Assembly: GCF_001194135.2 (NCBI RefSeq)
Contig: NC_068984.1
Location: 13,984,634-14,036,104 of the forward strand
DNA length: 51,471 nucleotides
Direction: 5' to 3'
Origin: Octopus bimaculoides
Lineage: Eukaryota
The position numbers and the translations under genes were made by a program. The notes under the pieces are model-generated. The model worked only from the letters and a program-made list of their open reading frames with translations, was not told the origin of the DNA and ran no database searches. How positions within the stretch are numbered: the stretch's first letter is position 1; each line of letters starts with the position of its first letter. Of the stretch, positions 11,090 through 44,578 are shown one piece after another.

Positions 11090-11690
11090 GTTTTTTACTC
11101 GAGGCACAAGGCCTGAAATTTTCGGGAAGGAGGAGCCAGTCGATTACATCAACACAAGTACGCAACTGGTACTTAATTTATTAACCTCGAAATGATATAC
11201 GGCAAAGTTGACCTCGGTGGAATTTGAACTCAGAACGTAAAAACAGACGAAATACATCTAAGCATTTCGCTCGGCGTGCTAACGTTTCTGGCAGCTCACC
11301 GCCTTTACTTTTGTACCCTAGGCACAAGGCCCGAAATTTTGGGGGATAGGGCCATTCAATTAGATTTTATTCCAGTATGCAACTGGTACTTAAGGATGAA
11401 AGGCAAAGTCGACCTCAGCGGAATTTGAACTCAGAAAGTAACGGCAGACGAAATGCCTATTTCTTTACTGCCCACACGGGGCTACACACAGAGGGGACAA
11501 ACAAGGACAGACAAACGGATTAAGTCGATTATATCGACCCCAGTGCGTAACTGGTACTTAATTTATCGACCCCGAAAGGATGAAAGGCAAAGTCGACCTC
11601 GGCGGAATTTGAACTCAGAACGTAACAGCAGATGAAATACCGCTAAGCATTTCGCTCGGCGTGCTACCATTTCTGCCAGCTCGCCGCCCT
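11090..11690 (-). mobile_element. SINE family B cluster: one monomer plus a dimer joined at about 11457
   Basis: Three gaatttgaactcagaa cores. Junction reads gacgaaatgcc|tatttcttt. Confidence 0.85.
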
Positions 11691-12515
11691 ACCTGTAATT
11701 TAATTTTGCTATAGATACAGGAACGTTCTTTATTTGCATGATACAATAAACTATCCTACATGGACTAAGTTTGACAAGTTATGTATTGAGTTTGTACTTG
11801 AGTAATTATTAATTTCTGTGTATTTCTATGCATATTTAATCTTGATTATCATATCCTTTATTGCATACATTGTAACATATTTTTCATTACTGCTATGTTG
11901 TTGTTTACTTGTCAATGTACAATGTTTTGCATAATATATATGGGAATATGGAGATATTTGTATGAATATCCATCTCTGTTTATATAAACGTGTGTACATA
12001 TATAGGTATATGCGTGCGTGCGCCTGTGTATATGTACATACAATACACATATACACATATATGTATGTACATGTATAAATTCAATATGTGTGAATGTTTT
12101 GCATATATACATATATATATTATAGATAGAAAGATAGATAGAAAGATAGATAGAAAGATAGAGAGAGAGGGGGAGATAGAATATATAGATAGATACACCC
12201 ATACATGCATACACACAAAACAATGTATTATATTAGGTTATATCCGGTTATAAAACTTTATGAATTTTTAATCACACGTATTTCTGGCTAGTATTTGTAT
12301 ACTATTACTGTGTCTCTCTGATGTCGTAATTCATTTATATATTTAAACATTAATTCATATTTTTCATTCAGTTTCGGATTATTAATACTTTTCATATGAC
12401 ATATTAACTAATTTAACCGTTTTTTCCTTTCTCTATGCATACATGCCCATATATCATCATCATTATTTATATAAGAATGAATGTATATATTTACATACAC
12501 AAACACATATATACA

Positions 12516-12564
<49 letters not shown>

Positions 12565-12697
12565 NNNNNNNNNNNNNNNNNNNNNNNNNNNNNNNNNNNN
12601 NNNNNNNNNNNNNNNNNNNNNNNNNNNNNNNNNNNNNNNNNNNNNNNNNNNNNNNNNNNNNNNNNNNNNNNNNNNNNNNNNNNNNNNNNNNNNNNNN

Positions 12698-12741
<44 letters not shown>

Positions 12742-13247
12742 TCTCTGATTAGTTTAGGAATTAATGTGTGACGTAAAGAATAATTTAATACTTATAAATC
12801 TAATCTTAAATTCATCTAATATTTTAATAATTATAATAATAATTATTTATTGTAATAATCTAAATTTTATTAAAACCGTGTGTATATATTCAGTAATTTC
12901 TGTTGATCTCTTCAATACTTAACTACAATATTTCTGGTTTACCTGATTTGTACATTCTCTAGGTATAGAGCATCTCGAAGCTGTCCTTCTAGGTTTATTC
13001 CAACTAGATATGTTTTTTAGCTCATTGTCTGGTAGACTTGCCTTCTTCTTGTTTTAATGTTAGACTTCTTGTATAGACAGCATTAAAAAAAATCTAAACT
13101 AACTCATTCTCCATTCATTTCTAATGAAGATCGTAAGCAACCTTTGCATTAATGACAACCATTTTGGAAACTGGTTTTGTTTTTTGATTAATTATATAAA
13201 TTCCTCGACTTGGAACCAATACGGTATTTTAATATATAGAGAACATA

Positions 13248-13378
13248 TTCCGCCGAGGTTGACTTTGCCTTTCATCCCTTCGGAGTCGATAAATTAAGTA
13301 TCAGTTGCATACTGGGGTCGATTTAATTGACTGGTCCCCTGCCCAAAGATTTCGGGCCTTGTGCCTATAGCAGAAAAG
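13248..13378 (+). mobile_element. SINE family B, 5'-truncated (tail type 2)
   Basis: ttccgccgaggttgactttgcctttcatccc...ccttgtgcctatagcagaaaag. Confidence 0.8.
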
Positions 13379-13614
13379 AATATAGAAGGAACATCTGACG
13401 TAACTATTAGCATTTCTTGACTCATTCAAATAGAAAACAAAGATGTCTTAAAGTTATAGATGGCGGTGGAAATATCAAACTGTATTTCGTTTTTAAGTTA
13501 ATAGTGAAATCCACTCTGGTAGGCTCCCATCAGCAGTTTCACACTTGGATCTCATAGTTCCGAAGTGAATTTCTGCACTGTTTAACCATATTGTGCCTAT
13601 CTCATACATATACA

Positions 13615-13665
<51 letters not shown>

Positions 13666-13867
13666 GAAAGTACATGAGAATACCTACAAATCTCCACACA
13701 TACATACATACATACATACATACAAAGAAGAATACCCTGTTATTGATGTTGAAATTCCAATAAAGGACCTTTGGATCTAGGTTCAAAGCCAGATTTTTCT
13801 CCATTGGCAAGAAATTTTGAAATACAACTGAACAATGACATATATACATACATGCATGCTGGTATGT

Positions 13868-14067: not shown

Positions 14068-14660
14068 TGAGCGAGGCGACCACTCCACAGGCCCTCGCTT
14101 CCCATTCCAACTATCAGGGAATATTGCGTTCAGCCAATCACGGACAGTCAGTGAATAATGTGGAGGAGCACCATTCTGCTGCTAGCATAATTCTTCAAAG
14201 TTCTCTTGTCCCTTTAACTTAGGGAGAACTTGGTTTTGTAAAAGTTTCAGATACGTGACCCTATTTACGCCACCTTCAATAAAGAATGGCCCCACGAGTC
14301 CGTTGTAATTCACACCTGCACACACCATTATGCCAGGACTCTTGTGGACATACCCAATCATGATTCGAGTATTTTCTCGTCTCCAGTACACACGGTTATA
14401 CGGAACGACACTCCGTGAAACATAAAATTTTGACTCATCAGTCCAGACAACTTGTTCTTCCAATGTTGGATCATTATTCAACATGTCCAGCCATTTTTCT
14501 GCAAACTGCAAACGATGATCTGGATCATCTTCCATTAATCCATGAATCAAACGAAGGATATAAGGATACAGTTTCATATCATGGAGCGTGTCTTAAAGAT
14601 GTCTTTGAGAGAAAAAATGAGTTCGATCTCATTCCACATAGCGGAACATCTTGCAAGTGA
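14059..14660 (-). mobile_element. Tc1/mariner-superfamily transposase remnant
   Basis: VVWTDESKF (first catalytic D), GIMVCAGV..GLVGPFFIEG, QQNGAPPHY (QQDGA with D to N) and VEWSPRSP (WPPRSPD). Truncated before the third acidic residue. Confidence 0.85.
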
Positions 14661-14842: not shown

Positions 14843-14894
<52 letters not shown>

Positions 14895-15771: not shown

Positions 15772-15813
<42 letters not shown>

Positions 15814-15988
15814 CATATATATGTACAGATATACAAAAACATATATATATGCTATATATATATATATATATCCTATACATATGTATATATATATATATAC
15901 ATACATACATACACGCGCACTCACATATATCCATACATACGTGTGTGCATATATGTGTGTCCGTGTGTGTATATATGTGTGCGTGTTT

Positions 15989-16051
<63 letters not shown>

Positions 16052-17015
16052 TATATATTATCACATGATATTGGCAAAAAGAAGAGAACAAATCTTTGCG
16101 CTTTACTCCAGTTACAGAATGATTTGTCTTATATTTTTAATGATAGATTCTGCCACAGTGGACACCAACTTGTGATACATGAGAGCTCGGCTAATTGAGT
16201 GCAGAAAAGTATTTATTTGTGTAAATGATAATAGCTAATAATATTTAATTCTATGAATATTTCCAACATGTGTTCGACACTACACTCCTTTGGGAGTAAA
16301 AATATCGCAATGAAATCTTATTGTAATTCATATATGGCGTTTCGTTATAACTCCATTGATTTCGTATAAATTCTGCAATATGTCTACACCTGAATGGTGT
16401 GTAACTAAATTTATATATGCTGTCACATACTGATATATTATTAAGCAATGAGTCACGCTCGTAGAAATAACACAAGAATATACACCTCGCTATTCCAGCA
16501 TATATATTCTTTACTCGTATTTAATAAATGACGTACATATATCTCCATGCAATATTTCAATACATATAGAATCTTTAAAATAAATATTATAAGATAAAAC
16601 CACAAGAGCTGCATGAAACGTCTGGTTGAGTTGTTTATCTTCCATTGGTAGTATCTGAGAGAAAACGGAAGGATGGGAAAAAAACGCTTTCATTTAGCTG
16701 TAAAGTTTAGCAACGTTTAATGGAATGCTTCTATCGATTTACCAGGATATTTGCATATGTTGTTCGAGTATCTTGTTTTCAGTAGCCTGTCTGTATTTAT
16801 ACTGATTCCCGGCTTAAACACATACCTACTTATCCTGTTGGGGGACAGTTTTAAACTTAACTAATGTAATCGTCTCCACTATTGCGAACGGTAAAATTGA
16901 CTCTGCCGAAATTTGAACTCTGAACGTATAGTGTCGTAGCTTATTAAGGATTTACTCTACCGGTATTTCGTTGCTGATGTACAATTCTGTCTTTGTCAAT
17001 ACTCATAAATGGTTT

Positions 17016-17390
17016 AAGACGGCGAGCTGGCAGAAATGTTAGCACGCCGGGTGAAATGCTTAATTTAATGCGAAATTTTTACTCCCAAAGGTGTGTAGTG
17101 TCGAACACATGTTAGAAATATTCATAGAATTAAATATTATTAGTCATTATCATTTACACAAATAAATACTTTTCTCCACTCAATTAGCCGAGCTCTCATG
17201 TCTGTCTTTACGTTCCGAGTTCAAATTTCGTCTGTCTTTACGTTCTGAGTTCAAATTCTGTCGAGGTCGACTTTGCCTTTCATCCTTTCGGGGTCGATAA
17301 ATGAATTACTAGTTGCGTACTGGGGGTCGATCTAATCAACTGGCCCCCTCCCCCCAAAAAATTTCAGGCCTTGTGCCTAGAGTAGAAAAG
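17016..17390 (+). mobile_element. SINE family B (tail type 2) with a 139-bp insert in its anticodon-like loop
   Basis: Head ends gaaatgctta, insert spans 17063-17201, then gtctgtctttacg resumes with a ~30-bp tandem duplication. The insert is the reverse complement of 16177-16316. Confidence 0.9.
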
Positions 17391-17779
17391 AATATTCATA
17401 ATTCTTTCTAGATTTGCCACACACAAGCAAGTATTTAGCTAGTGGTTCGGTTGACTGCATTGATCTCAGTACTTGACTAGCAGTTTATTTTGGCGACTCC
17501 GACGGAACGACTGATAGACAAAGTTGACTTCAGCGGGAGTTGGATACAAAACATAAAGAGCCCAAACAAATACGGCAATGCAATTCTATTTCCAGGGTTC
17601 TAAAATTTCTCCCAATTCACAACCTCTGTTGCAGTAATTGATATAAACAAATACACTAGGTTGACATATGCCTGCAGATATACATAAATCTATCGCAAAT
17701 CAATAATACATACTTAGGTACATGGCTATGCACTCAATATTACTTTCTTTACACTAATTACTTTGTAATATTAAACAAT

Positions 17780-17930
17780 TTTAAAGCTGAAATACCTGGA
17801 CAACTTCTATTACCTTAAAAACTTTACAGAATTTTTCCACTTTCTTCTAGTAGATTTGAACGTCATTTTGCCTTGCTCCGAAGTTTATAAGTTTCAGTAA
17901 AAGAGACGTCAATTCAAAAGAATATATATA
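17780..17930 (+). mobile_element. Possible hAT transposase C-terminal remnant
   Basis: KLYRIFPLSSSRFERHFALLRSL resembles the P-S-S-x-x-ER-x-FS dimerisation motif. Confidence 0.3.
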
Positions 17931-19892
17931 ACTTTTGTACAGAAAGATGTACTTGTGGCTCCTGAAAAGAGAAATCAATAATAATTCATTCAACTATTCC
18001 GATTTGGTGATCAATTACCAATTTTAACCTACTTTATATACTAGTCTAATTCAATAATTCTATATTATTCGATAATTGTAAGTTATACGAGATTTTCTTG
18101 AATTTACAGAGAGGTAAAAGATAAAAAGTTGTGAAAATAATTATAAGCAGCAATGCCTTACGGACTTCGAAATAACGTGTTCACCAAATCCTAAATTAAT
18201 CATAAACGATAGGTTTAATTTACACATTAGCAATTAATATTGCTTCTTTGTTTTAAGAAAGAAGTTTAAACAAAACATATTACATTCAGCGTGGAATAGT
18301 TTGTTGAGTGTATATTTAATTGTAGTGTTTCATTCCAAGAACTGCAGTTAATTAAGTTGAAGTATTTGTTCCTTTCTTCAATACATATGTATTTCCCCCG
18401 ACTTCTTTGGCGCCAATAACCAGATGTCCAACCATCAGACTTAAACTAATTCTCATACACACAAAAAAAAAAAAGAAAAATTAAAACATGCTCACCATTC
18501 TCAGACCTACTTTCTTAAGGGAACGTGCTACATAAAAAAGATTATTCTCTACCAGCGTCTTAGATTGCAATACAAAGCAAAGAATTCTTTACATTCTTCG
18601 TTGTATTATATGAAAAAAAATGAAACGAGGAATAAATGGGTAAATTATATCTTACAAATCTATTGAAGGGTGGCTGCGGTAGAGTTACGGAATGAATTCC
18701 AGTAATATTAATGCTTTACAAATAATTCGAATAATACATCATAAGAACCCTTTTTCAATGGAATGAGATAATCCTTTTTTGTGAAAGAACTGTAGAAAAA
18801 AAATAAAGAATATATGCTTGGTGTCGTTTTATGAGATCCAATCAAAACTTGGATCAGACTTGCTACATACATTGAGAATTCGATTTAACCATCAACATTC
18901 ATCTTTTCACATCGTATCACGGGTGTTTATAAAGAAAACTCGAACAGTTTTGCGATACTATTTTCACTAGTGAATAAACCGACGAGAAAAAAAAAAAGAA
19001 GATTTTCAAATTCTTCAACATATCTTCTTTCTTTCAAAGATATAAGAATAATCTTCTAGTTATTATCACTTCAGTTATAGGAGAGCACAGAAAGCTATGG
19101 AATAAATATTCATGGATTATATACTTGACACAGAAGTGCGATATCGATATCAATTTCAGCCAAATTTATCTTTAGTCGTAGAACGTGAGATTTTTTCATT
19201 TTTTATTTTTTATTCTGCTTTAGTTTTCTACGATAGAGAAGGCCAAGTTATGACGTGCATAACCTTTTGCAGAAAGCTCGAGGTACAACTGGAAGCGACT
19301 AAATGAAATTGGGAGTTGTATTTCTTTTTACCACATGGGGCCCACCAAGTTTCAATTATCCTTTACATTTAATCGAAACGCTTCAAGATGTCGTAGATAA
19401 CGTGACTCAGAGGAACTGGTAAACAGATTCCATGAAATATTATTTGACCATATTACAATGTTAGTAGATTACATTTTAATTCTAATCCTGATCACACCTA
19501 GTTTTCGTTTCTATCTAATCTTCATCAATTCAAACTTCTTCAAAAGTGACTAATTGGGACAGTGTTGCACATTCTTCGCGTCAAATCCTTTACGATCATT
19601 CAATTAAAAAGGTTTCATCTCTTTAGGTAGCAAGTGAGCTTCACTAATGCTTAAAATGTTTGCCAAAAGTATGTATTCTATAGAGTCCGAGTAGAGAACA
19701 GGAACTACAGTCTCAAATATAGTATGCATAAATGTATGTGCAATAGCTGATGTTTTTATGTAGTACTTCTCGTCTCATAAACCTACCTCTAACTACAAAT
19801 TATATGCTCTTTTATGTGAATGTAATAAAACGTTCCTGACAGACAGAGCTTCCGTATCAGTGCATAACTGCTATTTCATTCTGATAAAGCGC

Positions 19893-20300
19893 AAGAATGG
19901 CTGTGTGGTAAGTAGCTTGCTTACGAACCACATGGTTCCGGGTTCATTCCCACTGCGTGGCACCTTGAGCAAGTGTCTTCTACTATAACCTCGGGCCGAC
20001 CAAAGCCTTGTGAGTGGATTTGGTAGACGAAAACTGAAAGAAGCCCGTCGTATATATGTATATATATATATATGCATGTGTGTGCATATGTTTGTGTGTC
20101 TGTGTTTGTCCCCCCAACATCGCTTGACAACCGATGGTGGTGTGTTTACGTCCCCGTAACTTAGCGGTTCGGCAAAAGTGAGCGACAGAATAAGTACTAG
20201 GCATCCAATGAATAAGTCCTGGGGTCAATTTGCTCGACTATAAAGACGGTGCTCCAGCATGGCCGCAGTAAAATGACTGAAGCAACTAAAAGAGTTCAAG
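19893..20300 (+). mobile_element. SINE family A, full length
   Basis: Collinear with the other family A copies. Confidence 0.9.
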
Positions 20301-20324
20301 AGAGTATAACTATATATTGCTTTC

Positions 20325-20515
20325 AAATTTTGATACAAGGCCAGCAATTTTAGGGGAAGAGGTAAGTCGATTACATCAACCCCTAGTGCTCAACTGTTAC
20401 TTTTTTTTATCGACTCTTAAGGACAACAGGGAAAGTCGACCTCAGTGGAATTTGACCTCGATATGCCGCTAAGAATTTTTCCCAGCGTACTGAACATTCA
20501 TCCAGTTCACTACCT
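20325..20515 (-). mobile_element. SINE family B, diverged and internally deleted
   Basis: gtcgattacatc and aaagtcgacctcagtggaatttga motifs. Confidence 0.65.
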
Positions 20516-20745
20516 TTGGTAGCTGTATATTGATGAGAAATACTTCAGAAATTGTAAGCCGAGTTCAGCAATTACATCTCAATGTATAATAGAAAATTGG
20601 TACCCTTTTCAATTTCTGACAATAGTTTTTTATTGGGTAATTTAAGAAGACTAATAGGGTTCTAGCGAAATTTCAAACACAGACACACACACACACACAC
20701 ACATACACACACACACACACATTATATACATGATATTTTATTTTC

Positions 20746-21020
20746 GAAGGGCAGCGAGCTGGCAGAATCGTTAGCACGCCGGGCGAAATGCTTTAATTGA
20801 ATGTCCGTAAAGGATTTCACGCGAAGAATGTGCAGCACTGTTCCAATTATTTCGTCTGCTGTTACGTTCTGAGTTCAAATTCCGCCGAGGTCGACTTTTC
20901 CTTTCATCCTTTCGGGGTCGATTGAATAAGTACCAGTTACGTATAGTGCGGTCGATGTAATCGACTTAATCCTTGTTTGTCCCTTCTATGTTTAGCCCTC
21001 TGTGGGCAATAAAGAAATAC
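20746..21020 (+). mobile_element. SINE family B (tail type 1) with a 56-bp insert in its anticodon-like loop and a 13-bp TSD
   Basis: TSD ATATTTTATTTTC at 20733-20745 and 21021-21033. Insert 20794-20849 is the reverse complement of 19551-19606. Confidence 0.9.
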
Positions 21021-21599
21021 ATATTTTATTTTCCACATCGATAGTTCGGTTGAGTAAAACAGGGTACTAAAATTCTTGGTGCTGTATCGTTGTTTTCTTA
21101 TCGTAGTTTAGCATGTGATTTTCCTGAGAAAGTCATGTGACTCAAACGTTAGGTAGACTGTTTGATATAGCATCAGTCTTTGTATGGAGGGGTTTTTCCT
21201 TTATGATATATCATACGTGTGATTATACTACTTTGCTATATAGTTATTAATTAAAGACAGCAGAATTAAGATCAATAAATAAATACTTCCGTATGGGATT
21301 GTGTCAAATAATTTGAACACGATCCCCTATTCATATAGATAAATGCAATATATTAATAGTACTTGTGGTAACAAATCTCGTGATGATGATGGTGATGGTC
21401 GTCATCGTTGTTCGTTAATGGTTTTCTGGAACAAAAATTTGAGAGCAAGCAGAGTTTGAAGAACTCTGCGCAGAAGAACGTTGAATCCGAAGTTGTTACG
21501 AGATCGCGAGGTCGACGACGACAACAGAGGATTGGTCGACACGCAAATCTAGATGACCGTATAGTCGATGGTGCAATAGATGAAGTTGATCACAGTGAT

Positions 21600-21900
21600 G
21601 CTGGTGCTTGTGTTGAGCATCAGATGAAGTTGACGACACAGGTATTGCTGCTGACCAACAGATGTAGACACCCACACAGATGTCGGCGCTGGCAAATAGA
21701 TCTAAACTGGAACAGCAGTGGTGCTGGACAACAGATGTAGCCAGACACACTGGTGTTGCTAACCAAGAGATGGAGGGACCCACAAAGATGTCATCACTGT
21801 CCACTAGATTTAAACTGGAACAGCAGTGGTGTTAGCCAGCAGATGTAGACAGTCACACCACTGGTGTTGCGAACCAACAGATGTAGATGATCAGAAATTT
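21600..21900. repeat. Degenerate ~108-bp tandem repeat in a GC-richer island
   Basis: AAACTGGAACAGCAGTGGTG at 21704 and 21812. CCAACAGATGTAG-like motifs at 21655/21763/21874 and 21728/21836. Confidence 0.75.
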
Positions 21901-22419
21901 GACCAACGTGTTGTCGATCAACGGATGCAGATAGCTACGCTATGTTGCTGAGCAATACATGTAAGTGGCGTTGGCCTACCCATGATGACGTCCATACCGG
22001 TGTGACAGATTCATTGCTGGTACTGATCAACTGACGTTGACGGCCAAATTGGTGGTTTCGATTCACAGAAGAACGACATCAGTGGTGTTCACCAACAGAT
22101 GAAAATGAAATCATTGATGTTCTTACTAGACGGCCAAACAGGCAGTGTTACTGACCAACTACTGTAAATGGCACAAACATTTTGTTGTTGACTTGCAAAT
22201 GTACATGAACATATAAGTGGTACTGTTGACGATGATGACCACAAATGTGGTGTTGTTGACTATCTGCTGATACTACCACATCGCGAGTTTTTGTTCACCA
22301 CAAGCATGGGGATAAAACAAAGATGAAGAAAGCCAGGTAAAGATGACCTTAAAGGTGATTGCCTGAAGCTCACACTCCAGAAGATAGAAATAAAATTGCA
22401 GCCAATAGTGATTTTGCTA

Positions 22420-22858
22420 ATGTTGCTGGCACTGCTGCTGATGTTGTTAATGGTTATTATGTTGATGATTTAATGAGGAGGGGAAAAGGAGGAGGAGGAG
22501 GGGAGAAAGAGTGAAAGAGAAAAGGTGAAAGAGGTGATGATGAAGATGATGATGACGAGAACGAGGAGGAGCAAGAGGAGGGCGACAATGACGATGGTGG
22601 TGGGGTAGATGCTGGCGGTGGTGTTGGCAGTGGTGGTGTTAATGGTGATGATGATGATGACGATGTCAAAGATGACCAGTTTGATGATGACCAGAGCAAC
22701 AATTTTGACGACGATGATGACGATGCAATTGATGGGGAAAGACTGACCAGATGCAGACGGAATGAAGAGATGGGGAAGGAGTGAGGAGAAAACGGAGAGG
22801 GAATGAGGAGGAAGAGGAGTATGCTGCATCTCCTACTGAAGCTGCTACTGCTGCAGAC

Positions 22859-22891
<33 letters not shown>

Positions 22892-22925
22892 ATTGATGAC
22901 GACTGCTACGACGACCACCATGATG
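22420..22925. repeat. Compound triplet low-complexity tract (GAT/GGT/GAG)
   Basis: Direct reading of the sequence. Confidence 0.85.
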
Positions 22926-24194
22926 GAATCTCGCTTGGCACGTTGTAAATAAATAAAGTAGAGAGAGTGAAAGAGAGGAGAGAAGCCATAGAATAAAAAC
23001 CAAAATGACTTAGCAGCAAAGTAAAAGAACATCGAATGTGTACCGAAGTTTCTTTATTAAATCGAAAAAGACCATCAATGTTTAAAACTGTGTCGATTTT
23101 GTAAGAAGACAAATAATGAGAATAAATAAAATTTCCCTGGTAAAAGTTGTGTAAACTTCGTCATTATTTGACAACTAGCCTATTGCTTTAACGTAGTATA
23201 TTTGCACTGTATATTTCTTATTGTATTTTAGTAGGTATAAGGATTCAGTGCAGATTAATTTAGTTTAGTTTGAGAAAATTTGAGAAGCAGCTTCTATTTG
23301 TGCCAATAGCCATATGTTTCCGTTAGTGCAAAGCGACTATTCACACGTTCCGTTTGTTCATTGGTTGTAAATCCTTTAAAATACAATGCATCAAACAGCA
23401 ACTTCTATAATTGCTACCGAACATATTTGCAATCTCTGACAATTAAACGTCTACCTCAAACCAAATATGAGCCGTTAAATTCTGTATTTAAGTGAATAGT
23501 TTGACTAATTCATCATTAGACTCGTCTTGTGTAGGTCACAGCAAATATGTCGAGGAATCGATAAGGTAGACAAACGATGTCTAAGGTATTCACATATGTT
23601 ATGTTTCGATCTTTGAGTTGTGCAATCGAATATTTAATTATTGTACATCCCTGTATATATACTGAGAACATTCAATAAAGACCGATTAAAATAGTTAATA
23701 ATTTTTACATCTATAAATATATAGTTTCTTCCATTCTTTCTCTCCATCTTCCCTTCCCATACAACCACTTCTACCGTCCGCCTAAATGACATTTAATTCT
23801 CGTTTGCATTACTCCACCTACCAAACGAATATTCTGTCAAAAACTATATATAAAGTCGGAAGGAAAAAAGCAGACCGTAGGCTCATGGCAACTGGTAAGC
23901 AAGAACTCTCAAATCACAGATAAACGGAAATTTTCTTCCCCCAAAATTAAATATCTCTGCCTGTGTGTATATAGGTGCGTATATGTGTGAGATACCATAA
24001 AGCAAAATTGTTCAGTACTGTTAGGTAGAATGGAATTGTATTCATTCAAATTATGTCGCTATTTTAGGATATCTGTTCTCATGAAGTGAGGAATTTGGAA
24101 CCGTGTCTCACATAGACTTAAATTTGAAAGAATTTAAAACCACACCCACTCCCACCCACATATATTTTACCTTTTAAATTGTATCTTTTATTTG

Positions 24195-24395
24195 ATACCA
24201 GTCATTAGATTGCGGACATGTTGGGGCATCGCCTTGGAAGATGTTTAGTTGAATGAGTTGATACTAGTACTGAGTATTTCAAGCCTGGTACTTATTCTGT
24301 CGGAATATTGTGCCGAGCCGCTACGTTACGGGGATGTAAACACACCAGCACCGTTTGTCAAGCGGTGGTGGGGACACAAAGACACACACACACAT
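24195..24395 (-). mobile_element. SINE family A, 3' body fragment
   Basis: gagccgctacgttacggggatgtaaacacaccagca is the reverse complement of the family A body. Confidence 0.7.
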
Positions 24396-24461
24396 TATAT
24401 ATATATATAAGGTTATGAAGGGTATTGGATTCAACCAAACCCAAACACAGTTTAATTTCAG

Positions 24462-24570
24462 CTAATAACACGTCTTGCATTGAGACTGATTGAAGAATTT
24501 CTGCTTGAATTAGAGACTTGTGGATTAGAAAAGCTGGAGGAAGACCGGTTTCTAACCATCAGCAGCTACT
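24462..24570 (+). CDS. Candidate exon (phase 0 to 1): LITRLALRLIEEFLLELETCGLEKLEEDRFLTISSY
   Basis: Acceptor tttaatttcag and donor GTAAGC. Only one of the three frames is open. Confidence 0.4.
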
Positions 24571-25580
24571 GTAAGCTAAATTGGCTCGTCATTTATGATG
24601 TGAATATAACCGATCATATAAATTCTCCTGCAGAATTTTCGTGCAGAAAAATGAAATGCGTTGGCAGCTCAATTCAAACCCAACTGTAGTATTGTGCTCA
24701 ATACTTACTGTGTTACATGTAGTTACTGTAATAATTGCAGTTTGGTAGAGATACAAAGCGGCCTGGATAGCTATTTGATATGTAACAGGCAAATGAGCTT
24801 CACAGCGGTATAAAGCGTTCGTATCATGACTGATACCCATAAAGATATCTGTACGCATATCTGGCGGTAAAAAGGCTTATTTGCCTGTTATTCTGGTATA
24901 ATGTCTGCACGCGTATCAATGGTGAAGCAAGCGAGCGAATTGTCTATTTCATATATCCTGCATCAATAATATTCCATTCTTTGGGTCAGCCCATTTCTTG
25001 TATAGTCTTGAGCTTTCACAGTGGTAATAGCATTGGATATTCAATCGAAAACTTGGAACGACCAATTACATATTGCCAAATGTTATTACAAATATCGTTC
25101 ATTCAAAAAAAATATAAAAAAGTCTCAAAACGATGACATATTTGTTATTAAATCATACTTTTCCCTATAAACAAGCGTAATATTCTGCTACCTTGACAAC
25201 AAGAATGTTCCAGTGGAGTAGAAAGTTGATAATAAAAAAATCCATTCGACTGGAGAAAAAATACATTAGCGCAGAAATATGCAATAACAGAAAACATGGC
25301 TGGTATACCAACATCTGTACAGCTACCGTTGCAGACAGAGTGATAATCAGGTGTGACTAATGCTTTACAAATCACACCAGCTGCATTAGGATACTCTTCA
25401 CTAAAAGCATCCCAGAAACTACATCTGTTCTATTCCATCGTATTTTGCTCAGAGAACTGAATTATTTTATAAGAGTTTTCGTTAGCATTATTCTCTAGAA
25501 ACATTTTCTTTCCATTGAAAAAAAAAAACAAAAAAAACAATTACTCTGGATGTTTCACTGTCTTTATGTCATCATTTCAG

Positions 25581-25642
25581 ATGATACTAAATGCAGCTAC
25601 CGGAAGTTGCTCCAGATGCTAATGGCTGAGTATAACCACCTC
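25581..25642 (+). CDS. Candidate exon (phase 1 to 0): (Y)DTKCSYRKLLQMLMAEYNHL
   Basis: Acceptor catcatttcag, phase-compatible with the previous exon. Donor is weak (GTAACC; alternatives at 25650 and 25661). Confidence 0.35.
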
Positions 25643-25899
25643 GTAACCAGTGAGCACATCGTAACCTCGTGTTACATGTACAGTGTTTAATATTTAGTTC
25701 TCATACAGCATGTCTTTCAAATTACGTTATCAGAATAGCTTTATGTGAATATAAGGTGTAATTTGTGTTTGGTTTCTAGGGACAATCATCCGCTGTTGAT
25801 GATATTTCTTTTTGCATCTATCCCTTCATCAACTTCAAATGCCTTACGGGCTTTCTTTCATCTTTCTTTGAAATGACTGTAATTGTGGTGTGGTGGTAT

Positions 25900-26170
25900 G
25901 CGAGATTTAGTAATCATGGAGGATATTCCAGAGAACGCAAGCTCCCGAGAGGAACTCCCATGCTCGCCTGGCAAAAGGATGAGGCCACCTGGATATGGAC
26001 CATATCATCCCGAAAATAAAACGTGATTTGCATAGGGTCAACACTCCTACAAAGTAAAAGCAAAGTTTCAGAAGCATCGAGACCTGGTAGAGGATGGCGT
26101 TCTTTTAGAGAGAGAAACATGATGCAGCGCAACAAAATGCAAAAAGAGGCTGCGAGGTAACAGGGATGCA
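25900..26170 (+). mobile_element. Possible RTE ORF C-terminal remnant
   Basis: MEDIPE...EEL..PGKRMRPPG resembles the RTE tail MED.RIPK..LYGEL..GKR.RGRP. Confidence 0.35.
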
Positions 26171-26239
26171 GCTGGGAGGGAAAAGAAAAGCGCGTTAAGA
26201 GTCCCAGAGTTGTAGAGTCGTGAATATTGTAGAAAAGTC

Positions 26240-26892
26240 GTGAGTGAGTGAGTGAGTGAGTGCGTGAGTAAGTGAGTGAGTGAGTGATGTGAGTGAGGCA
26301 GTGAGCGAGTTAGTGGAGTGAGTGTGTAAGTGAGCGAGCGAGTGAGTGAGTGGAGTGAGTGACTAAGCGAGCGAGTGATTGAATGACTGAGTGAATGAGT
26401 CAGCAAGTGAGCGTGAGAGTCCGTGAACGAGCAAGTGCGTGAGTGAGTGAATTGGTGAGTGAGTGAGTGAGTGAGTGAGTGAATGAGTGAGTGAATGAAC
26501 GAGTAAATGAGTGCGTGAGGGAGTGGATTGAGTAAGTGAGCGAGCCAATGAGTGAGTAAGTGAGTGGAGTAAGTGAGTGAGCGAGCGATTGCGTGAGTGA
26601 GTGAGTGAGTGAGTGACTGGAGTGAGTAAATGAGCGAGTGAGTGAGTGGAGTGAGTGGGTGAGTGAGTGAGAGAGTGATTGAGTGAGTGAATGTGTGAGT
26701 GAGTGAGTGAGGAAGTGAGTGAATGAGTGAGTGAGTGAGGGAGTAAGTTAGTGAGTAAGCGAGTAAATGAGCGAGTGACTGAATTGGCGGGTGAGTGTGT
26801 TTGTGAGTGAGTGAATGAGTGAGTAAGTGAGTGAGTGAGTGAATGAGTGAGTGAGTGAGTCAGTCAGTCAGTCAGTGAATGGAGTGAGTGAG
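26240..26892. repeat. Long imperfect (GTGA)n tetranucleotide satellite
   Basis: About 650 bp of GAGT/GTGA variants. Confidence 0.95.
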
Positions 26893-26935
26893 TATTGCAA
26901 TAGAATCGATCGATGTAAACCCTATTTATTCGTAG

Positions 26936-27013
26936 GATGCCTCAGAAAGCCGTGGCTCAGCAATGGAAACATCACTGATAAAAACTGCTAAAATGAATAT
27001 TACCAACACTAAC
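26936..27013 (+). CDS. Candidate exon (phase 0 to 0): DASESRGSAMETSLIKTAKMNITNTN
   Basis: Acceptor tatttattcgtag and consensus donor GTAAGT. 78 nt, only frame 0 is open. Confidence 0.45.
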
Positions 27014-27391
27014 GTAAGTCACATTCTCACTCTATTTACATCAGATTTGAATTTCTCAAAATACAGTTTAAGTTTTAATCAGAATGTTTCCTGAATACAA
27101 TCATTGTTTACGCTGTTATGGCTTAAATGTCATTGTCCAACGACTCACTCACCTATCCATTCATCCTGAAAAGATCTCTGATAAAGATTACTTTTGTAAA
27201 GTTATTTTCAAATGAAGATCTTATTGATGAAAATGTCACTGAGCCGTCAGCGTACAGTAACATCTTATTTCTACAGAAACAACATAAAAATTAGAGACAG
27301 AACTAGAAGATATTTGGCAAATTAATATATAACACGAGGAACCAGTTTTCGGTCTGTATATCTAGTTTACCATAATGTCTTTACATTTCAG

Positions 27392-27451
27392 TTTGTGCCA
27401 GAACCGCAGAATCTGTCCAGGAACCTTTTGTTATTTAGGTCTCCGATACAA
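27392..27451 (+). CDS. Candidate exon: FVPEPQNLSRNLLLFRSPIQ
   Basis: Good acceptor ctttacatttcag but weak donor (GTTATG). Confidence 0.25.
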
Positions 27452-28429: not shown

Positions 28430-28608
28430 GAAAGGGATTAAGTCGATTACATCGACCCCAGTGCGTAAATGGTAATTAATTCATCGACCACGAAAGGATG
28501 AAAAACGAAGTCGACCCCGGCGGAATTTGAACTCAGAACGTAACGGCAGACGAAATACCGCTAAGCATTTCGCCCGGAGTGCTAACGTTTCTGCCAGCTC
28601 ACCACCTT
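28430..28608 (-). mobile_element. SINE family B, 3'-truncated
   Basis: Matches the family B head and central domain, with the loop intact. Confidence 0.85.
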
Positions 28609-35699: not shown

Positions 35700-37940
35700 A
35701 AAGCAGATTTGGGGAGAGCGGACGGCTTGTCACGGATATAAATGCTCAAAACAACTGCATCACCTGAACAAGCGAGGAGGCCAATAAGACCCCAAGAAAT
35801 ATCGAAGAAGCATACATAAAAACAAAGAAGAACTGGAAGACACCATGACACAGTCCCAAACCTGTGCTTGAAATATTTAATAAACAAGCATAAAGAACTT
35901 GTAAAATTATATAACGGTATATTGAAAGGCCAGAAATAAAACCCAAATGACTCACTGAGAGAAAACAACCTTATTCTAATAACAAACTGCAACATCTACA
36001 GACACAGAACGAACGTTTACAGATACAAATCTACAGCGGACAATGCATTAACTGCAACAATAATTGAAGTTTATGCATTGTATGATTTTCCTCTCCAGAA
36101 GAACACAAAGAGTGTTGTAAAGACACTTATGGATGTAATAATTATGTAATAAATATTTAAAGATATAATGGGAAAATGATTTTGAAAGAATGTTCTAAAC
36201 ATGGCTTATATTGAGTGCAGAATTGTTAGTTTTTGTCAAGTACTCCCACCCGTGGAGTATGCATTTATTAGCTCCGAATATGTAAACACGAATAATAAAC
36301 TGGTAAATCAACCATATCATAAATGAATGGAACAGAATTCTACAGATAGGAACAAAAGAGGAATTTATGAAAATGAATCCCATCTATATGAGAAGAGGGT
36401 TATTCCAGAGGGATTCTTCTTCTCAAGGTCTTTTCTTTCTTTTTGCCTGGTGTTATTACTTTTATCAACTTCATTGCGAAACGACAGTTAACGCGAAAAC
36501 AGTGTGTAGGGAAGGGGAAGCGGTGGCTTTTGTGTATGAATGATATTGTGTTGTACGCCATCTATGATAGAAAATTGCAAACAATATTACAGAGAGTACA
36601 AACATTTATTAAAAAGTACCAAGTTAACCTTATAAATAGGAAATCTAATATAGAAAAACATCATTAATATTATATTAGTTAAAGAAAAATAAATATATGA
36701 GTTAGAACACATAGAAACAAAACATCATCGTATTTATCATTTATGCAGGAGAAATGGTAGCCTTCTGCATCTCCTAAATTGTTATGAAATGTCTATTGTA
36801 TGGCTACAAAAATATTTGGTTGCGAATAGAGAGAAAACTAATAGAATTGCTGCGAAAACGAACAAAACAAAAAGAAAATATTTCTCTCTCCCTCTCTCTT
36901 GAGGTGAGTTAACAATTGTAAGCAGAGGCTGAAAATAATAGACAGTAGTGAAGATACGAGAGAAATAACCTCAGAAGTGGTTAAAAATTTAAAAACTATA
37001 CTGGAAATGAGGTTACAAAATGTCATGGAAAATGGTAGCAAAAACATGCCTACGTATTCAACGTATGGTATGACTGAACAAAGCAAATACGACAAAAAAA
37101 TATATGTTTATCTATGGTTGAAAAGTACAGGATTCAAAGCTGAGTCTGAAGGATTTTTTCTTTTTATTTCAGTGTAAAAACAAAGTTCTAAAATTAAAAA
37201 CTATCAAAAGGATATCATTTTTTCTACTCTAGGCACAAGGCCGGAAATTTTGGGAAAGGGTGCCAGTCGATTAGATCGACTCCAATACGCAACTGGTACT
37301 TAATTTATTGCTGTTAAAGGGATGAAAGGCAAAGTCAACCACGGTGGAATTTGAACTCAGATCGTAAAGACAGACGAAATACCTATTTCTGTATTGCCCA
37401 CAAGAGGCTAAACATAGAGGGGACAAACAAGGACAGACAAACGGATTAAGTCGATTACATCGACCCCAGTGCGTAACTGGTACTTAATTTATCGACCCCG
37501 AAAGGATGAAAGGCAAAGTCGACCTCGGCGGAATTTGAACTCAGAACGTAACGGCAGACGAAATACCGCTAAGCATTTCGCCCGGCGTGCTAACGTTTCT
37601 GCCAGCTCGCCGACTTATAATAGAGAATATTTGCGCAAAGATGACGGTGTCGAAGCTTTGATAATGGGGACATTATCAAAGTCTAGGACATGCCAAGTCA
37701 TACAGACTGAAATAACAATTACTTCAATGAGTTTTGTGGATGATACAATTACCATAATGTGAGATATGCTAATCTATACATCTCGGAGATGGGAAAACAA
37801 CCCCAGTTTGAGTTACGTCAACCGGTACAAACAGAAACAGTAAAGGGACAGATATATTATCAAAAATCATCGGGATACAAAGTGTCTTCCCATTTTGGTC
37901 AATCCATCCGCATATTTAAAATAGACTTAGCGGAATTATG
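35700..37940 (+). mobile_element. R4/Dong-like (REL-type) LINE remnant, heavily decayed and interrupted by SINEs
   Basis: KNWKTP (cf. KNWKAPG), IYMRRGLFQRDSS (cf. IRRGIFQGDSLSP) and WLKSTGFKAESEGFF (cf. WL.S..LK.ETEGF). Confidence 0.65.
37212..37615 (-). mobile_element. SINE family B heterodimer (tail 1 unit plus tail 2 unit) joined at about 37383
   Basis: Junction gacgaaatacc|tatttctgtattgccc. Confidence 0.88.
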
Positions 37941-38275: not shown

Positions 38276-38959
38276 AGACGGAAGATATGTTAAATAGAAA
38301 TAATGACTGAATGAATAGGGATTAGGGAAATATAACCAAGAATATAGTAATGGTAATGTCAAAGGTAATAACCTACTTAGTGTAGTAAATAGTAAAACGA
38401 TGACACATTTTAATTAATTATAATTACACCTGTGGTGGGGAGAAGATGATTAAGTTAATGATAAATTCTGGTCAAGAAAGTGAAAGGTGATAACCCTAAA
38501 TGGAGGTAAATGCGATGTTGGTGGTGTAGTCATAAGGCTGGATCTTTTTTCAGTTTTATGAGATCTCAGTAAGGATATATTGTACTTCTTGCCTTAGACT
38601 AGGATCATTTGAGAAAAATAGTACGTGGCGGCTAATTATAATTTCTACTTTGGTGGGGACTTATTTCCGGTTAAGAAATGCAAATGAGACAGCCAAAAAG
38701 TTTTAATAACGTACTTTAAAATAAAATGATTCACTGCATTAAACATGTTAACACTAACGTTACAATTTGTTTCACATACAGAACATTGCACTGAATATTT
38801 TTCTATTAGCCATTTTCAAGTTATCACGGTATTGGGAAATTATTATTTACGGAACAACCTTTATGATATCAGATGTGATCTTTTACAAGGATTAATGCTG
38901 TCAAAATTTAGCACAAGGCGAATAATTTTATCAGGAGGAGATTAGCCTATCATATAAAC

Positions 38960-39110
38960 CCGAGTATTTTGAAAGTATTTTATTTTATTGATTCCCGTAA
39001 GGATTGAAGGCAAATTTGAGCTCGGAGGGATTTTAAGTCAGAAGCTAAAGTGCCGAAAGAAACACCATTAAGCATTGTGTCCGGCGCGCTAACGATTCTA
39101 TCAGCTCACA
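38960..39110 (-). mobile_element. Old family B-like SINE
   Basis: Degenerate gaaggcaaa..cggagggattt..aagcatt..cggcgcgctaacgattct. Confidence 0.55.
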
Positions 39111-39629
39111 GTTATTTTGTCGGACAACAATGCTAAACATCATACTTCTCTAACGAAACATACCCGAGGTTGTTACCATGTTACGAATTAGAATCACTCC
39201 AAACTCCGAAGAGACGGCCTTAATTATAGCTTAACCAGGGTGTGATAAGATATTCCATTTCAAATATTTATGTTGCACAATGATGGCAATTTATATATGA
39301 AATATTAAAAGGTTTCTTCTTGCTGTGGTTGATTGAAATTGCACAGATATTTATGTACACTGTTTTAAGGAAGGGCAACTTGGATTGCTGAAGTCAAAAC
39401 AGTTGGTCTCAGAACATTGTTATGCAAAAGTATATTATTGTACATACATTCCGAAAACATACTACATGCTGATAGAATGCGTATAAAGGCGAGTTATAGA
39501 GTGGGAATCTGGTCAAATTCTTCCACGTGTTTCATGCTAATGTTTTGAATTAATTATAACCATGGTACGTGTCTACAGTGTTCAGTTCTCAGCTAAACAA
39601 CTATAACGTGAAGTTCATATAAAGCGCAA

Positions 39630-39812
39630 GGCATTGAGCTGACAGAAACGTTAGCGCGTCGGACAAAGTGTTAAGTTGGATATTTTCCGGCATTTTACAT
39701 CCTGAGTTCAAATCTCGTGGTGCTCAACTTTGGGTTTCATCCCACTTCTAGGTCAATAGAATAAAGTACCAGTTAAGTTCTGGGTTCGACATAATCGACC
39801 TGTCACCTTCCC
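39630..39812 (+). mobile_element. Old family B-like SINE
   Basis: gagctgacagaaacgttagc...gagttcaaat...aagtaccagtt. Confidence 0.6.
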
Positions 39813-40390: not shown

Positions 40391-40400
40391 GCGCATGCGC
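40391..40400. promoter_or_regulatory. NRF1-type palindromic motif
   Basis: GCGCATGCGC in a locally CpG-richer, repeat-free stretch. Confidence 0.35.
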
Positions 40401-41370: not shown

Positions 41371-41437
<67 letters not shown>

Positions 41438-41609
41438 CACATATACCTGCATACTTATATGCATATATATCAATCCACACATACATACATACTTATCCAC
41501 ACACTCACACGCATACATACATACATACATACATACATACATACACACATACATACATACATACATACATACATACATACATACATGCATACATACATTC
41601 ATGCATCTG

Positions 41610-41990
41610 CAGTAACCTTACCCGAATTACAAGTTCAGGTTTATACCTGTAATTATTGAGGCCCTGAGATATGCTACACACTGCCTGAATACCATTCTTG
41701 AGAAATCAGGCCTCACAAAACCAGAAAGGAGAAAGCTAATTCGAAGACTACAGATCTAATCTATCATTGAACTGTAAAAGTCTGTAAAACTTTCCAGAAG
41801 TTTATCATTTAAATATATATGAGCATGTCTAGATACGTAACTATATGCATGAGAATACGTACATAAAACATACAAATATGCACACCCTGTTTTTGATGTT
41901 GGAATTCCAGTGAAGGAACCTTGGATCTCGGTTAGAAACCGGTTCTTTCTTTATTAGCAAGAAATCTTGAAATAAAACTGAATAATAACA
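41610..41990 (+). mobile_element. 3' end of an REL-type LINE (endonuclease C-terminus plus UTR)
   Basis: YKFRFIPVIIEALRY..CLNTILEKSGLTKPERRKLIRRLQI. Shared with 10622-10945. Confidence 0.65.
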
Positions 41991-42005
41991 TGCATACACA
42001 CATAT

Positions 42006-42036
<31 letters not shown>

Positions 42037-43352
42037 CATGCATACATAGCTTTTTAAGTACTACATATACTTGGGGCCAAGTTATATAGTTAATATGAAT
42101 ATAGTTAATACTCAATGAATTTTGGCATTTGGGATGGCGACATATTTGCAATGTTGAAATTTAGATTTAAAAAATAAACGATATGGTTTTAAATAGAAAG
42201 TATTTTTATAATGTTATTTCTCTGTACTGGTTGTAGTATGTGTGTTGTACAGTGGTGGATGACCGGTTAGAGCTGGAAAACTGGAAGAACAGGATGCAGA
42301 GAAGTAGTTCAGGTGAGAGGATATACAGTCAATAATTTCAGAAAATCAGTGTTGCAAGGAACAACAGTAGAAGAGAAAATAGAAAGGTGTATACAACACC
42401 ACGGCTTTAGAAAAGCTGGCGAGCGAGTTGCAACTGTAGTTGTTTTCAAAACCCTTCTCTAATATGAAGGTAGTTTTCATCTTCCCCGCTTCCTCTATTG
42501 CTTTTCTTCTTCCTTTTCGTCCACTTTGTCACCATTTTCTTTAGTTTCTTTACAATATCTGCATTCTTTTCTGTCTCTCCTCCAGGATATCCTTCTTAGT
42601 TACAGTATCTTTCTCTTTCTTGATCATCCTTTTCTCTGACTTCATCAATGTATTCTTTATCTCTTCCCTTCATATCCTTCTCCATTTTTTCCCCGTTTTC
42701 TTCAATTCATATTTGTCGTCTGCTTCATCCATTTCTACTTTTTTCTCTTTTACTTGTTCATTTTATCGCCCCTTCTTCCCCATCCTCCTCCTTTCATTGT
42801 TATTATTGATATTATTAAACACATCGCACTACGCCTCTTTTCCCTCCCTCTTATTCACCATTTCCCACCTCCTGTTACACGTCTACCTATTTTCCCTGTA
42901 ATGTCAGGTCTCGCTCAGTTATTTTCCTTCTACATATTGTCTAGCTTAAAACTTCCATCCTCCTCTTTCTTTTACATTTTTATTCTCGTCCTTCAATACT
43001 TATTTTATCCTTCTTTCTAACTTCCTTTGTATTTATTTCTGCTCAATCTCTCTCATTATCATCACCTCCTTCATTTTCTTCTACATCTACGTCTCGTTCC
43101 AACAACGTTCCCGCCAACATCCACGTCCCTAGTAACATCACAACCACCACTGCCACCATCGCCTTCACCATTACAGCCAACAGCATCACTACCACAACTA
43201 CTAATACCACAGCCACCATCACCACCACCACTACCAACATCAACTACAGCACCATCATCACCAGCAGAACAAGCATAAAGAGCTCCTGTACCACCACCAG
43301 AAATACCACCCGCACCACTTGAACAACAACCAGCACTAACACTACCGCTATT

Positions 43353-43835
43353 TATTTCTTTATTGCCCATAGGGGGCTAAACATAGAGAGGACAAACAAG
43401 GACAGACAAAGAGATTAAGTCGATTACATCGACCCCAGTGCGTAACTGGTACTTATTTAATCGACCCCGAAAGGATGGAAGGCAAAGTCGACCTCGGCGG
43501 AATTTGAACTCAGAACGTAACGGCAGGCGAAATACCTATTTCTTTACTGCCCACAAGGGGCTACACACAGAGGGNNNNNNNNNNNNNNNNNNNNNNNNNN
43601 NNNNNNNNNNNNNNNNNNNNNTATTTATTTCTTTATTGCCCATAGGGGGCTAAACATAGAGAGGACAAACAAGGACAGACAAAGAGATTAAGTCGATTAC
43701 ATCGACCCCAGTGCGTAACTGGTACTTATTTAATCGACCCCGAAAGGATGGAAGGCAAAGTCGACCTCGGCGGAATTTGAACTCAGAACGTAACGGCAGG
43801 CGAAATACCGCTCAGCATTTCGCCCGGCGTGCTAA
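43353..43835 (-). mobile_element. SINE family B multimer inside one 15-bp TSD
   Basis: TSD AACACTACCGCTATT at 43338-43352 and 43836-43850. Unit junction at about 43536. Contains an N-gap. Confidence 0.85.
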
Positions 43836-44578
43836 AACACTACCGCTATTACCATACCAGTTACACAACTACCACAGCTACGACCGGCCGCGTTTACCAC
43901 AACCGGCTTACCATCGCCACTACAACAATCACCGCTGCCACCAACACCACCACCACAGCAACCGTTATGTCCGCCATCGTCTTCCCTACCTCTTCCTTCT
44001 ACCTTCGTCAAATTAATTCTCCGCCGTCCACTCTTTCCTTCTGTATTCTTTCACTAGATTTCGTAAAGTTGCATGAGTCAGTAAGATGTAGACTGACGAT
44101 GAAGCATTAATTAACATGGTAACTAGTTATATTATTTCCGAGCGTGGCTAATCGTCTTTTTATTTTCATTTTTACTCTTTATACATACATATCCACATAT
44201 CCATCCATACATACACACACACACACGNNNNNNNNNNTTATTTGCTGTTGTTTCTCTTTTTTTTTGGGTTTTGTTCTCTTTTATTTATTTATTTGTTTAT
44301 TTATTTATTTTTTTATTAATCAAATCTAGTTGCTAGGCAACATGAATGTAATCGTAGGCTGCGCATTTCGCTTATTCTCAAAGCGAGTAGCAAACATGTT
44401 TGCAGAGTTATAAGTGATTTGCCGGAGCACGTGATTTCCTATTTGTTTGCTTCTGTAACTGTTTGTATATAGTTGTGAAGTATGAATAGTTGGAGTGTCG
44501 TACGTACGTACGTATGTATGTATGTATGTATGTATGTATGTATGTTTGTGGGTGTATGCATGTATGTATGTAAATACA

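Follow-up and report, generated by a model that had tools for sequence, protein, structure and literature searches.

Template switching by the reverse transcriptase of long interspersed elements (LINEs) gives rise to bipartite and tripartite chimeras within one target-site duplication, as described in mammals and in Magnaporthe (Buzdin group; PMC2104539). A tripartite chimera with a 14-bp duplication is known, and in Magnaporthe switching recurs at the same nucleotides beside predicted hairpins, without microhomology (PMC2104539). Comparable structures are found in a 51,471-nucleotide stretch of Octopus bimaculoides DNA (assembly GCF_001194135.2, contig NC_068984.1, positions 13,984,634 to 14,036,104; hereafter the window), where copies of a short interspersed element (SINE), here called family B, break recurrently at the apical loop of one hairpin in their head. 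Template switching at this loop during target-primed reverse transcription is the best reading of these breaks, and it is held with moderate confidence. Switching of this kind is known already, and the unusual twist is the presence of reversed local DNA within the loop.

Like the published chimeras, family B composites run head to tail in one orientation, join a 3'-complete upstream unit to a 5'-truncated downstream unit and are enclosed by one duplication. Double switches, a recurrent nucleotide beside a hairpin and little or no microhomology are also shared. However, both family B partners belong to the same SINE family, and their breaks concentrate in the apical loop of a single defined hairpin rather than at a GCC*A/U motif. 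In addition, the middle segments of two family B elements are reversed copies of sequence about 1 kb upstream, not sense cellular RNA, and the polymerase would have returned to its original template. No description of an element that contains a reversed neighbouring copy with its head restored was found in the literature.

Chimeras of tRNA halves and LINE-1 provide a second parallel, as their breakpoints match anticodon-loop cleavage sites (bioRxiv 10.1101/2025.02.02.635956). In these, too, the break falls in the apical loop of a structured RNA of Pol III type, which suggests that pre-cleaved halves contribute to insertion. They differ in that they involve genuine tRNAs, for the most part run antisense to L1 and have been attributed to twin priming, whereas the family B head is unrecognised by tRNA models and its joined units share one orientation. 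Among mollusc SINEs, module exchange has been ascribed to template switching (PMC4758252, PMC4824008).

Family B has the features of a SINE: its copies are short and dispersed, carry target-site duplications of 9-15 bp and are variably truncated at the 5' end, with units starting at consensus positions 17, 24, 50 and 77. It is the one SINE family that is dense in this AT-rich eukaryotic DNA (GC 0.19-0.42, 13 assembly gaps), with about 16 copies and four older relatives recovered by blastn and nhmmer using window-derived profiles. All share a head and core (...GTCGATAAATTAAGTACCAG...), followed by either tail 1 (...GGGCAATAAAGAAATA) or tail 2 (...GGCCTTGTGCCTAGAGTAGAAAAGAATAT). Every stand-alone tail-1 copy has its own target-site duplication of 9-15 bp, beginning with A or ATA. 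No LINE sharing either tail is present in the window. The consensus may resemble cephalopod SINEs, and the Octopus and mollusc SINE literature yielded no description of the family B element or of its dimers.

Breakpoints in these copies are concentrated at the loop. Six of the 11 discontinuities lie in consensus 46-52 (binomial 3e-7), as do four of the eight that are left once gap-adjacent and degenerate cases are removed (scan statistic over any 7-nt window, P = 0.005), in a test that assumes independent events, which is itself at issue for the dimers. The recurrent breaks proposed in an earlier note on this DNA, made from the letters alone, are thereby confirmed as real and non-random.

The head motif GAAATGCTTAGCGGTATTTC occurs nine times with up to three mismatches, including five exact occurrences, where shuffled sequence gives an expectation of 0. 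In a fold of the consensus head it forms the top of a 13-bp hairpin, with consensus 33-45 pairing with 50-62 around the loop U46 A47 G48 C49. The motif had previously been drawn as a stem-loop of 7+6+7 nucleotides (GAAATGC-TTAGCG-GTATTTC); the motif itself stands, but the stem has 13 bp and the loop 4 nt. As sense RNA, the 33-nt hairpin reaches -16 kcal/mol (z -4.6), a value equalled by 0 of 200 shuffles. As sense DNA it is weak (-5.6 kcal/mol, z -1.8), because four of its pairs are G.U, and as antisense DNA it is near random (-3.7 kcal/mol, z -0.5). This asymmetry between RNA and DNA is the main reason for placing the cause of the breaks at the RNA level.

The loop had also been assigned to the tRNA anticodon position, a claim that survives as a positional analogy only. 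ARAGORN found no tRNA genes in the window, Rfam gave no match there at gathering score, and a full copy had no Rfam tRNA hit even at E<=10. The head region instead folds as one hairpin whose 13-bp stem is unlike an anticodon arm. Promoter boxes can be picked out by eye only, with GAGTTCAAATTCC approximating the B box GGTTCGANNCC with one extra base and TGGCAGAAACG forming a poor A box.

Two of the elements broken at the loop contain reversed copies of neighbouring sequence (Table 1). In the tail-2 element starting at 17016, the insert is followed by an internal duplication of 29 nt (1/29 differing; period 30, 1.9 copies, 96%), and this repeat of consensus ~57-86 points to a third template switch within 17016-17389. 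The tail-1 element starting at 20746 consists of consensus 1-46, a 54-nt insert and a body that resumes at consensus 52. Its insert is the reverse complement of 19553-19606, with homology between 20792-20849 and 19608-19551 (58 nt, 5 mismatches, 91%) and 2-nt microhomologies to the SINE (TT, TA) at its two borders. Both inserts lie inside the target-site duplications of their elements. For 20746-21019 the duplication is a perfect 13 bp, ATATTTTATTTTC, at 20733-20745 and 21021-21033, while for 17014-17389 it matches at 11/13, as do 15 of 500 shuffles.

Neither insert nor source has further copies within the window, and homology stops at the insert borders. Both sources lie 5' of the SINE (0.75 and 1.19 kb) in the same gap-free stretch, 15772-27514. 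The inserts come from sequence less than 1.2 kb away that is unique in the window, and not from the high-copy or distant loci that would have spoken against the earlier proposal. The two lie within 4 kb of each other and represent independent events, as that proposal held, because their tails (tail 2 and tail 1), inserts and duplications all differ.

Divergence provides some indication of when the inserts were captured. The SINE parts of the two hosts differ from consensus by 4.7% and 5.6% (non-CpG 2.3% and 4.7%), and the inserts differ from their sources by 5.0% (confidence interval (CI) 2.0-10.1) in the 17016 element and 8.6% (CI 2.9-19.0) in the 20746 element. Insert-source divergence is therefore about twice the non-CpG divergence of the host from consensus (5.0% vs 2 x 2.3-4.7%; 8.6% vs 2 x 4.7-5.6%). 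A twofold relation to the post-insertion divergence is what simultaneous capture and integration would give. These values fit capture at or near integration, with wide intervals that would also be compatible with a somewhat later event. Differences of this size also mean that the inserts are not assembly duplicates.

Templated insertions are known from break repair and replication template switching, where they arise by polymerase-theta end joining or by fork stalling and template switching/microhomology-mediated break-induced replication (FoSTeS/MMBIR). They resemble the family B inserts in their short microhomologies, nearby cis templates, inverted copies and serial switches; they have no tie to retroelement RNA structure or integration time, and no precise 3'-end fusion. 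Post-integration DNA fragility could accordingly be considered, with the quasi-palindrome stalling replication or being cut and microhomology-mediated templated repair (fork template switch, MMBIR or polymerase-theta type) copying nearby sequence in reverse. The 0-2 nt of microhomology, the inverted cis sources within 1.2 kb and the multi-step switch with its internal duplication would all suit such repair, as would the related SINEs of opposite orientation that adjoin both loci (17424-17625 and 20335-20515). However, the hairpin is weak as DNA on either strand, and fusions within one duplication to the precise 3' terminus of another SINE would be left unexplained. Insert-source divergence, within its wide intervals, is also as large as capture at integration predicts. 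Post-integration repair is considered unlikely.

Inversions at the 5' end of LINE-1 are reportedly produced by twin priming, as described by Ostertag and Kazazian in 2001. A 5'-inverted LINE-1 class is also listed in PMC2912911. As in twin priming, the inverted segment in family B would be made during integration with involvement of the upstream target end. Twin priming inverts the element's own 5'-end sequence, whereas the family B inserts match unique upstream flank and sit between head and body, so that flanking genomic sequence lies inside the element with the head restored. A DNA transposon with long terminal inverted repeats, bounded by source and insert, was also considered and rejected; the SINE head would fall inside it, which does not fit insertion at the loop. 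Separately, an old degenerate inverted pair, with weak alignments, is present at 16854-16931 (minus strand, consensus 64-142) and 16958-16989 (plus strand, consensus 46-75). This pair adjoins the 17016 element upstream and resembles a 5'-inverted insertion, and its plus-strand fragment also terminates at the loop.

The remaining type of loop breakpoint is a junction between SINE units (Table 1). Three multimers had been reported whose downstream unit starts at GG(T/C)ATTTC, and all three junctions are present: on the minus strand, ...AAAGAAATA is joined to GG(T/C)ATTTCG at 11457/11456, 37383/37382 and 43537/43536. At each, the exact tail-1 3' end (GAAATA) meets G50, with which the 3' arm of the stem begins, and no spacer intervenes. 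The supposed dimer at 11457 proved to be a trimer. Its 15-nt duplication matches at 13/15, equalled by 9 of 2000 shuffles, and neither the units nor their sub-combinations have a duplication of their own. The three composites are of different types, namely tail 1 with tail 2 of GCCGTT type, tail 1 with tail 2 of GTCTTT type and, at the third locus (locus 43), tail 1 with tail 1.

Two other routes to these junctions were rejected. If tail-1 units had inserted within the loop of an element already present, a head fragment should lie upstream of 11689 or 37616, and there is none. If the junctions arose from microhomology of the tail-1 end with the head, GAAAT would be joined to GCTTAGCGG, which is not observed. 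A further multimer at 47756-48185 provides a comparison, as its junction at 47988/47989 joins GAAATA to AGAAACG. Head-to-tail composites with tail 1 upstream are common, and the loop is a favoured, not the sole, joining point. The 47756-48185 pair also has a possible 10/12 duplication around it and, at its 5' end, about 27 nt of partly repeated filler in which AATGGAGTTGG appears twice.

Table 1. Coordinates of hairpin motifs, insert-bearing elements and multimers of SINE family B in the window
Feature	Position	Strand	Remarks
Head of insert-bearing tail-2 element, consensus 1-47	17016-17062	+	
Loop insert, reverse-complement copy of 16177-16316	17063-17201	+	139 nt, 7 mismatches, 1 gap, 5.0% divergence
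Source of 17063-17201 insert	16177-16316	+	~750 bp upstream of insert, same contig
Repeat of consensus ~57-86 (17201-17229) and body with tail 2 (17230-17389)	17201-17389	+	
Tail-1 element with loop insert	20746-21019	+	Head 20746-20793, insert 20794-20847, body 20848-21019
Source of 20794-20847 insert	19551-19608	+	~1.19 kb upstream, reverse orientation
Trimer unit 1, full-length tail 1 (1-234)	11457-11689	-	4.8% from consensus; no own duplication
Trimer unit 2, tail 2 from consensus 50 (GGCATTTCG...)	11309-11456	-	50-215 with 16-nt internal deletion; 10.3% from consensus
Trimer unit 3, full-length tail 2 (1-219)	11091-11307	-	
Upstream 15-nt target-site duplication of trimer	11690-11704	-	ATTAAATTACAGGTA
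Downstream target-site duplication copy of trimer	11072-11086		ATTAAAAGACAGGTA
Clean dimer, full-length tail-1 unit	37383-37616	-	2.1% from consensus
Clean dimer, tail-2 unit from consensus 50 (GGTATTTCG...)	37220-37382	-	11.2% from consensus
Locus 43, tail-1 unit from position 50 (43351-43536), preceded by 39-nt tail-1 3' end (43537-43574)	43351-43574	-	Context unreliable
Locus 43, tail-1 unit, consensus 24-233	43622-43835	-	
Comparison multimer, tail-1 unit then tail-2 unit from consensus 17	47756-48185	+	Junction not at loop
Intact hairpin top GAAATGCTTAGCGGTATTTC	37560-37579	-	Example within full tail-1 unit
Other intact copies of GAAATGCTTAGCGGTATTTC	9241-9260, 11634-11653, 28552-28571, 48010-48029		Plus four with 1-2 mismatches

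The third junction stands in an unreliable context. At locus 43, 43349-43536 is identical at 188/188 positions to 43622-43809, and identity stops exactly at the edge of the gap 43575-43621. The locus is bracketed by a perfect 15-bp duplication, AATAGCGGTAGTGTT, at 43836-43850 and 43336-43350. As other SINE copies differ by at least 5%, the 188-nt duplicate is probably a contig-end repeat that was collapsed or placed twice. The 47-N gap hides either a real second unit or an overlap. The multimer context is untrustworthy, but within one contig the 39-nt tail-1 end is joined to G50. The locus-43 SINE is surrounded by G/T-rich low-complexity stretches (GGT/GTT-type) at 42900-44000 and 45900-47170, and because of this composition its duplication partly resembles the SINE loop. 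The 8-mer TAGCGGTA, common to the duplication and the loop, was considered as a target preference and attributed to the same local G/T richness.

The perfect 188-nt duplicate at a gap edge, together with the many gaps in the scaffold, could suggest more generally that chimeric contigs or collapsed repeats created the junctions and inserts. However, the inserts differ from their sources by 5-9% with no intervening gap, the 11457 and 37383 junctions lie >800 bp from any gap, and the units of each composite differ among themselves. An assembly artefact is extremely improbable as a general explanation. The gaps of the window fall mostly within dinucleotide or tetranucleotide repeats.

A further composite, the only external copy identified, lies outside the window. 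A protein search with the SINE's open minus-strand frame returned one 543-nt ENA contig, L001 (ERZ23499442), in which positions 82-400 are family B sequence. There a tail-2 unit starting at about position 125 adjoins the end of a tail-1 unit, a junction that differs from those in the window's loop-broken multimers, and 4 nt (GCTT) are deleted from the loop. Although filed as a metagenome contig, L001 is taken to be host DNA because it carries the family B SINE. Pattern scans of viral contigs and of metagenome contigs gave no further family B copies. Six metagenome contigs (L002-L007) contain the exact 20-mer GAAATGCTTAGCGGTATTTC; as the rest of the SINE is absent from them, they are taken as chance matches in a very large collection.

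Dimeric and composite SINE families, such as Alu and tRNA-dimer SINEs, are well established (reviewed in PMC4758252), and they likewise consist of tandem SINE-derived units with a fixed junction. The halves of such families share a history, whereas those of family B are unequally diverged and of mixed composition. If the dimers were one or a few composite subfamilies amplified from master dimers, the same junction in three loci would be expected. The clean upstream units and L001 also share the AATCCG/CTGTTTG variant (CCG/CTG at 'AATCCGTTTG'), which places them in one young tail-1 lineage, and the consensus is without an internal T4 terminator, which also speaks for this reading. However, copies of one dimeric source are expected to be equally diverged in both halves. 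When the two clean dimers are compared, their upstream halves differ at 13/232 positions (5.6%) and the downstream halves at 23/142 (16.2%; Fisher p = 0.001), which disfavours a simple master dimer. The downstream units also differ in their markers (GCCGTT vs GTCTTT) and tails (tail 2, tail 2 and tail 1), and the two loop inserts would be left unexplained. Amplification from one or a few masters is distinctly improbable; the single dimeric master, which would have undone the earlier proposal, appears from these comparisons an unlikely origin of the junctions.

Several observations weigh against template switching during integration. No target-site duplication was found around the dimer at 37220-37616, the junction at 43536 is only 39 nt from an assembly gap, and the window contains no stand-alone element truncated at position 50. 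Across 14 copies the hairpin is kept in 85% of cells with no covariation signal above shuffles, a null result that is uninformative either way because the copies are young repeats. The sample is 51 kb only, profiles and consensus were built from window copies, the consensus sequences rest on 6-8 copies, and all confidence intervals on divergence are wide. Finally, distance from consensus is 2.1-4.8% for upstream units and 10-12% for downstream units, a contrast that a simple model does not predict; these distances combine change in the source with change after insertion, measured against a consensus from few copies. Integration of each composite as one piece would require downstream RNAs derived from old and diverged copies, such as copies lying within longer transcripts.

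The same age difference would be expected from sequential insertions, in which young tail-1 elements landed later at the 5' edge of old tail-2 elements truncated at 50. The loop would then still be a truncation hotspot, with no jump from RNA to RNA, and the two mismatches in the 15-nt duplication of the trimer would suit an old event. However, tail-1 units lack individual duplications when they are part of a composite and have them (9-15 bp) when they stand alone. Duplications of tail-1 elements begin with A or ATA, yet GG follows these junctions, and two landings on one nucleotide would require an unexplained target preference. Sequential insertion is rather unlikely on this evidence, and co-integration is moderately preferred.

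Under template switching at the hairpin loop, a polymerase copying SINE RNA would tend to leave its template at the apical loop of the sense-RNA hairpin. We infer that this happened during integration and was caused by either a pause of the polymerase or a nick in the RNA, in which case the halves could stay joined through the 13-bp stem. The earlier note had similarly proposed that reverse transcription stalls, or the RNA is cut, at the loop and then resumes on another template. A cause at the RNA level is favoured by a hairpin that is stable only as sense RNA and by composites within single duplications, while the apparent age of the downstream units, which look much older, does not fit. Overall, the earlier interpretation is partly supported.

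Two outcomes may follow. In the first, the polymerase would jump to another SINE RNA, in every case one with tail 1, exactly at its 3' end (...AAAGAAATA) and copy it, producing a head-to-tail multimer in which GAAATA is joined to GGTATTTC inside a single target-site duplication. The tail-1 3'-terminal hexamer GAAATA (228-233) is the exact reverse complement of TATTTC (52-57) in the 3' arm of the stem, for example at 37383-37388 and 37374-37379, and the junction GAAATA-GG-TATTTC is a near-palindrome that folds anew into a small hairpin. A tail-1 RNA could dock by its 3' end on the stem arm of the donor and so be near when the polymerase reaches G50, although this 6-nt match is possibly a coincidence.

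In the second outcome, 54-139 nt would be copied from a template of opposite polarity about 1 kb upstream of the integration site, with 0-2 nt of microhomology. The polymerase would then return to the head side of the loop, leaving a SINE with a reversed neighbouring copy in its loop. A cut with the halves held by the stem would explain why downstream units begin exactly at G50, how the polymerase could regain the head after its detour and why small lesions occur in the loop, as in L001 with its 4-nt deletion. The insert product implies synthesis on a minus-polarity template upstream of the SINE. Candidates for this template include a resected, single-stranded upstream target strand that snaps back during second-strand synthesis, an exposed lagging-strand template beside replication-coupled integration, and an antisense transcript. 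Both inserts are upstream and inverted, as the snap-back and lagging-strand options predict (n = 2).

Site-specific cleavage of SINE RNA has a precedent in mouse B2 (PMC13172522). The family B loop could by extension be a programmed processing site of the SINE RNA, self-cleaving or nuclease-targeted, that is regularly loaded, because the 13-bp stem retains both halves, with an antisense copy of its neighbour to give a local inverted repeat and double-stranded RNA in cis, but this is very improbable. In a transcript spanning insert and source, which lie about 1 kb apart, the two would pair as an RNA duplex of 54-139 bp, a possible substrate for editing or silencing in cis. The guide-like role once suggested for the inserts (ADAR editing or silencing in cis) is without evidence.

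If the pattern extends genome-wide, it would represent a defined RNA structure directing where a non-LTR (long terminal repeat) reverse transcriptase changes templates, and a simple route to SINE multimers and new composite SINEs in a SINE-rich genome. It would also reveal an undescribed by-product, namely SINEs that carry reversed copies of their neighbourhood and so make inverted repeats on the spot. From the side and orientation of the captured pieces one could then read which nucleic acid is exposed at the integration site (resected target DNA, lagging-strand template or nascent RNA), which is hard to see directly.

Other features of the window include the older related SINE copies, located at 17424-17625 (minus), 20335-20515 (minus), 38943-39110 (minus) and 39628-39804 (plus). 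The first two adjoin the insert-bearing elements in opposite orientation, and in the copy at 20335-20515 the 19 nt that separate the hairpin from the B-box-like motif are missing. A 131-aa open reading frame (ORF) at 14182-14577 (minus) appears transposase-like by eye; it had no Pfam match at E<=0.01, and an exact-protein look-up of two window ORFs, this one among them, returned no record. A 108-bp tandem repeat (2.2 copies, 80%) occupies 21649-21887, and at 26240-26893 a long (GTGA)n tract extends for about 650 bp.

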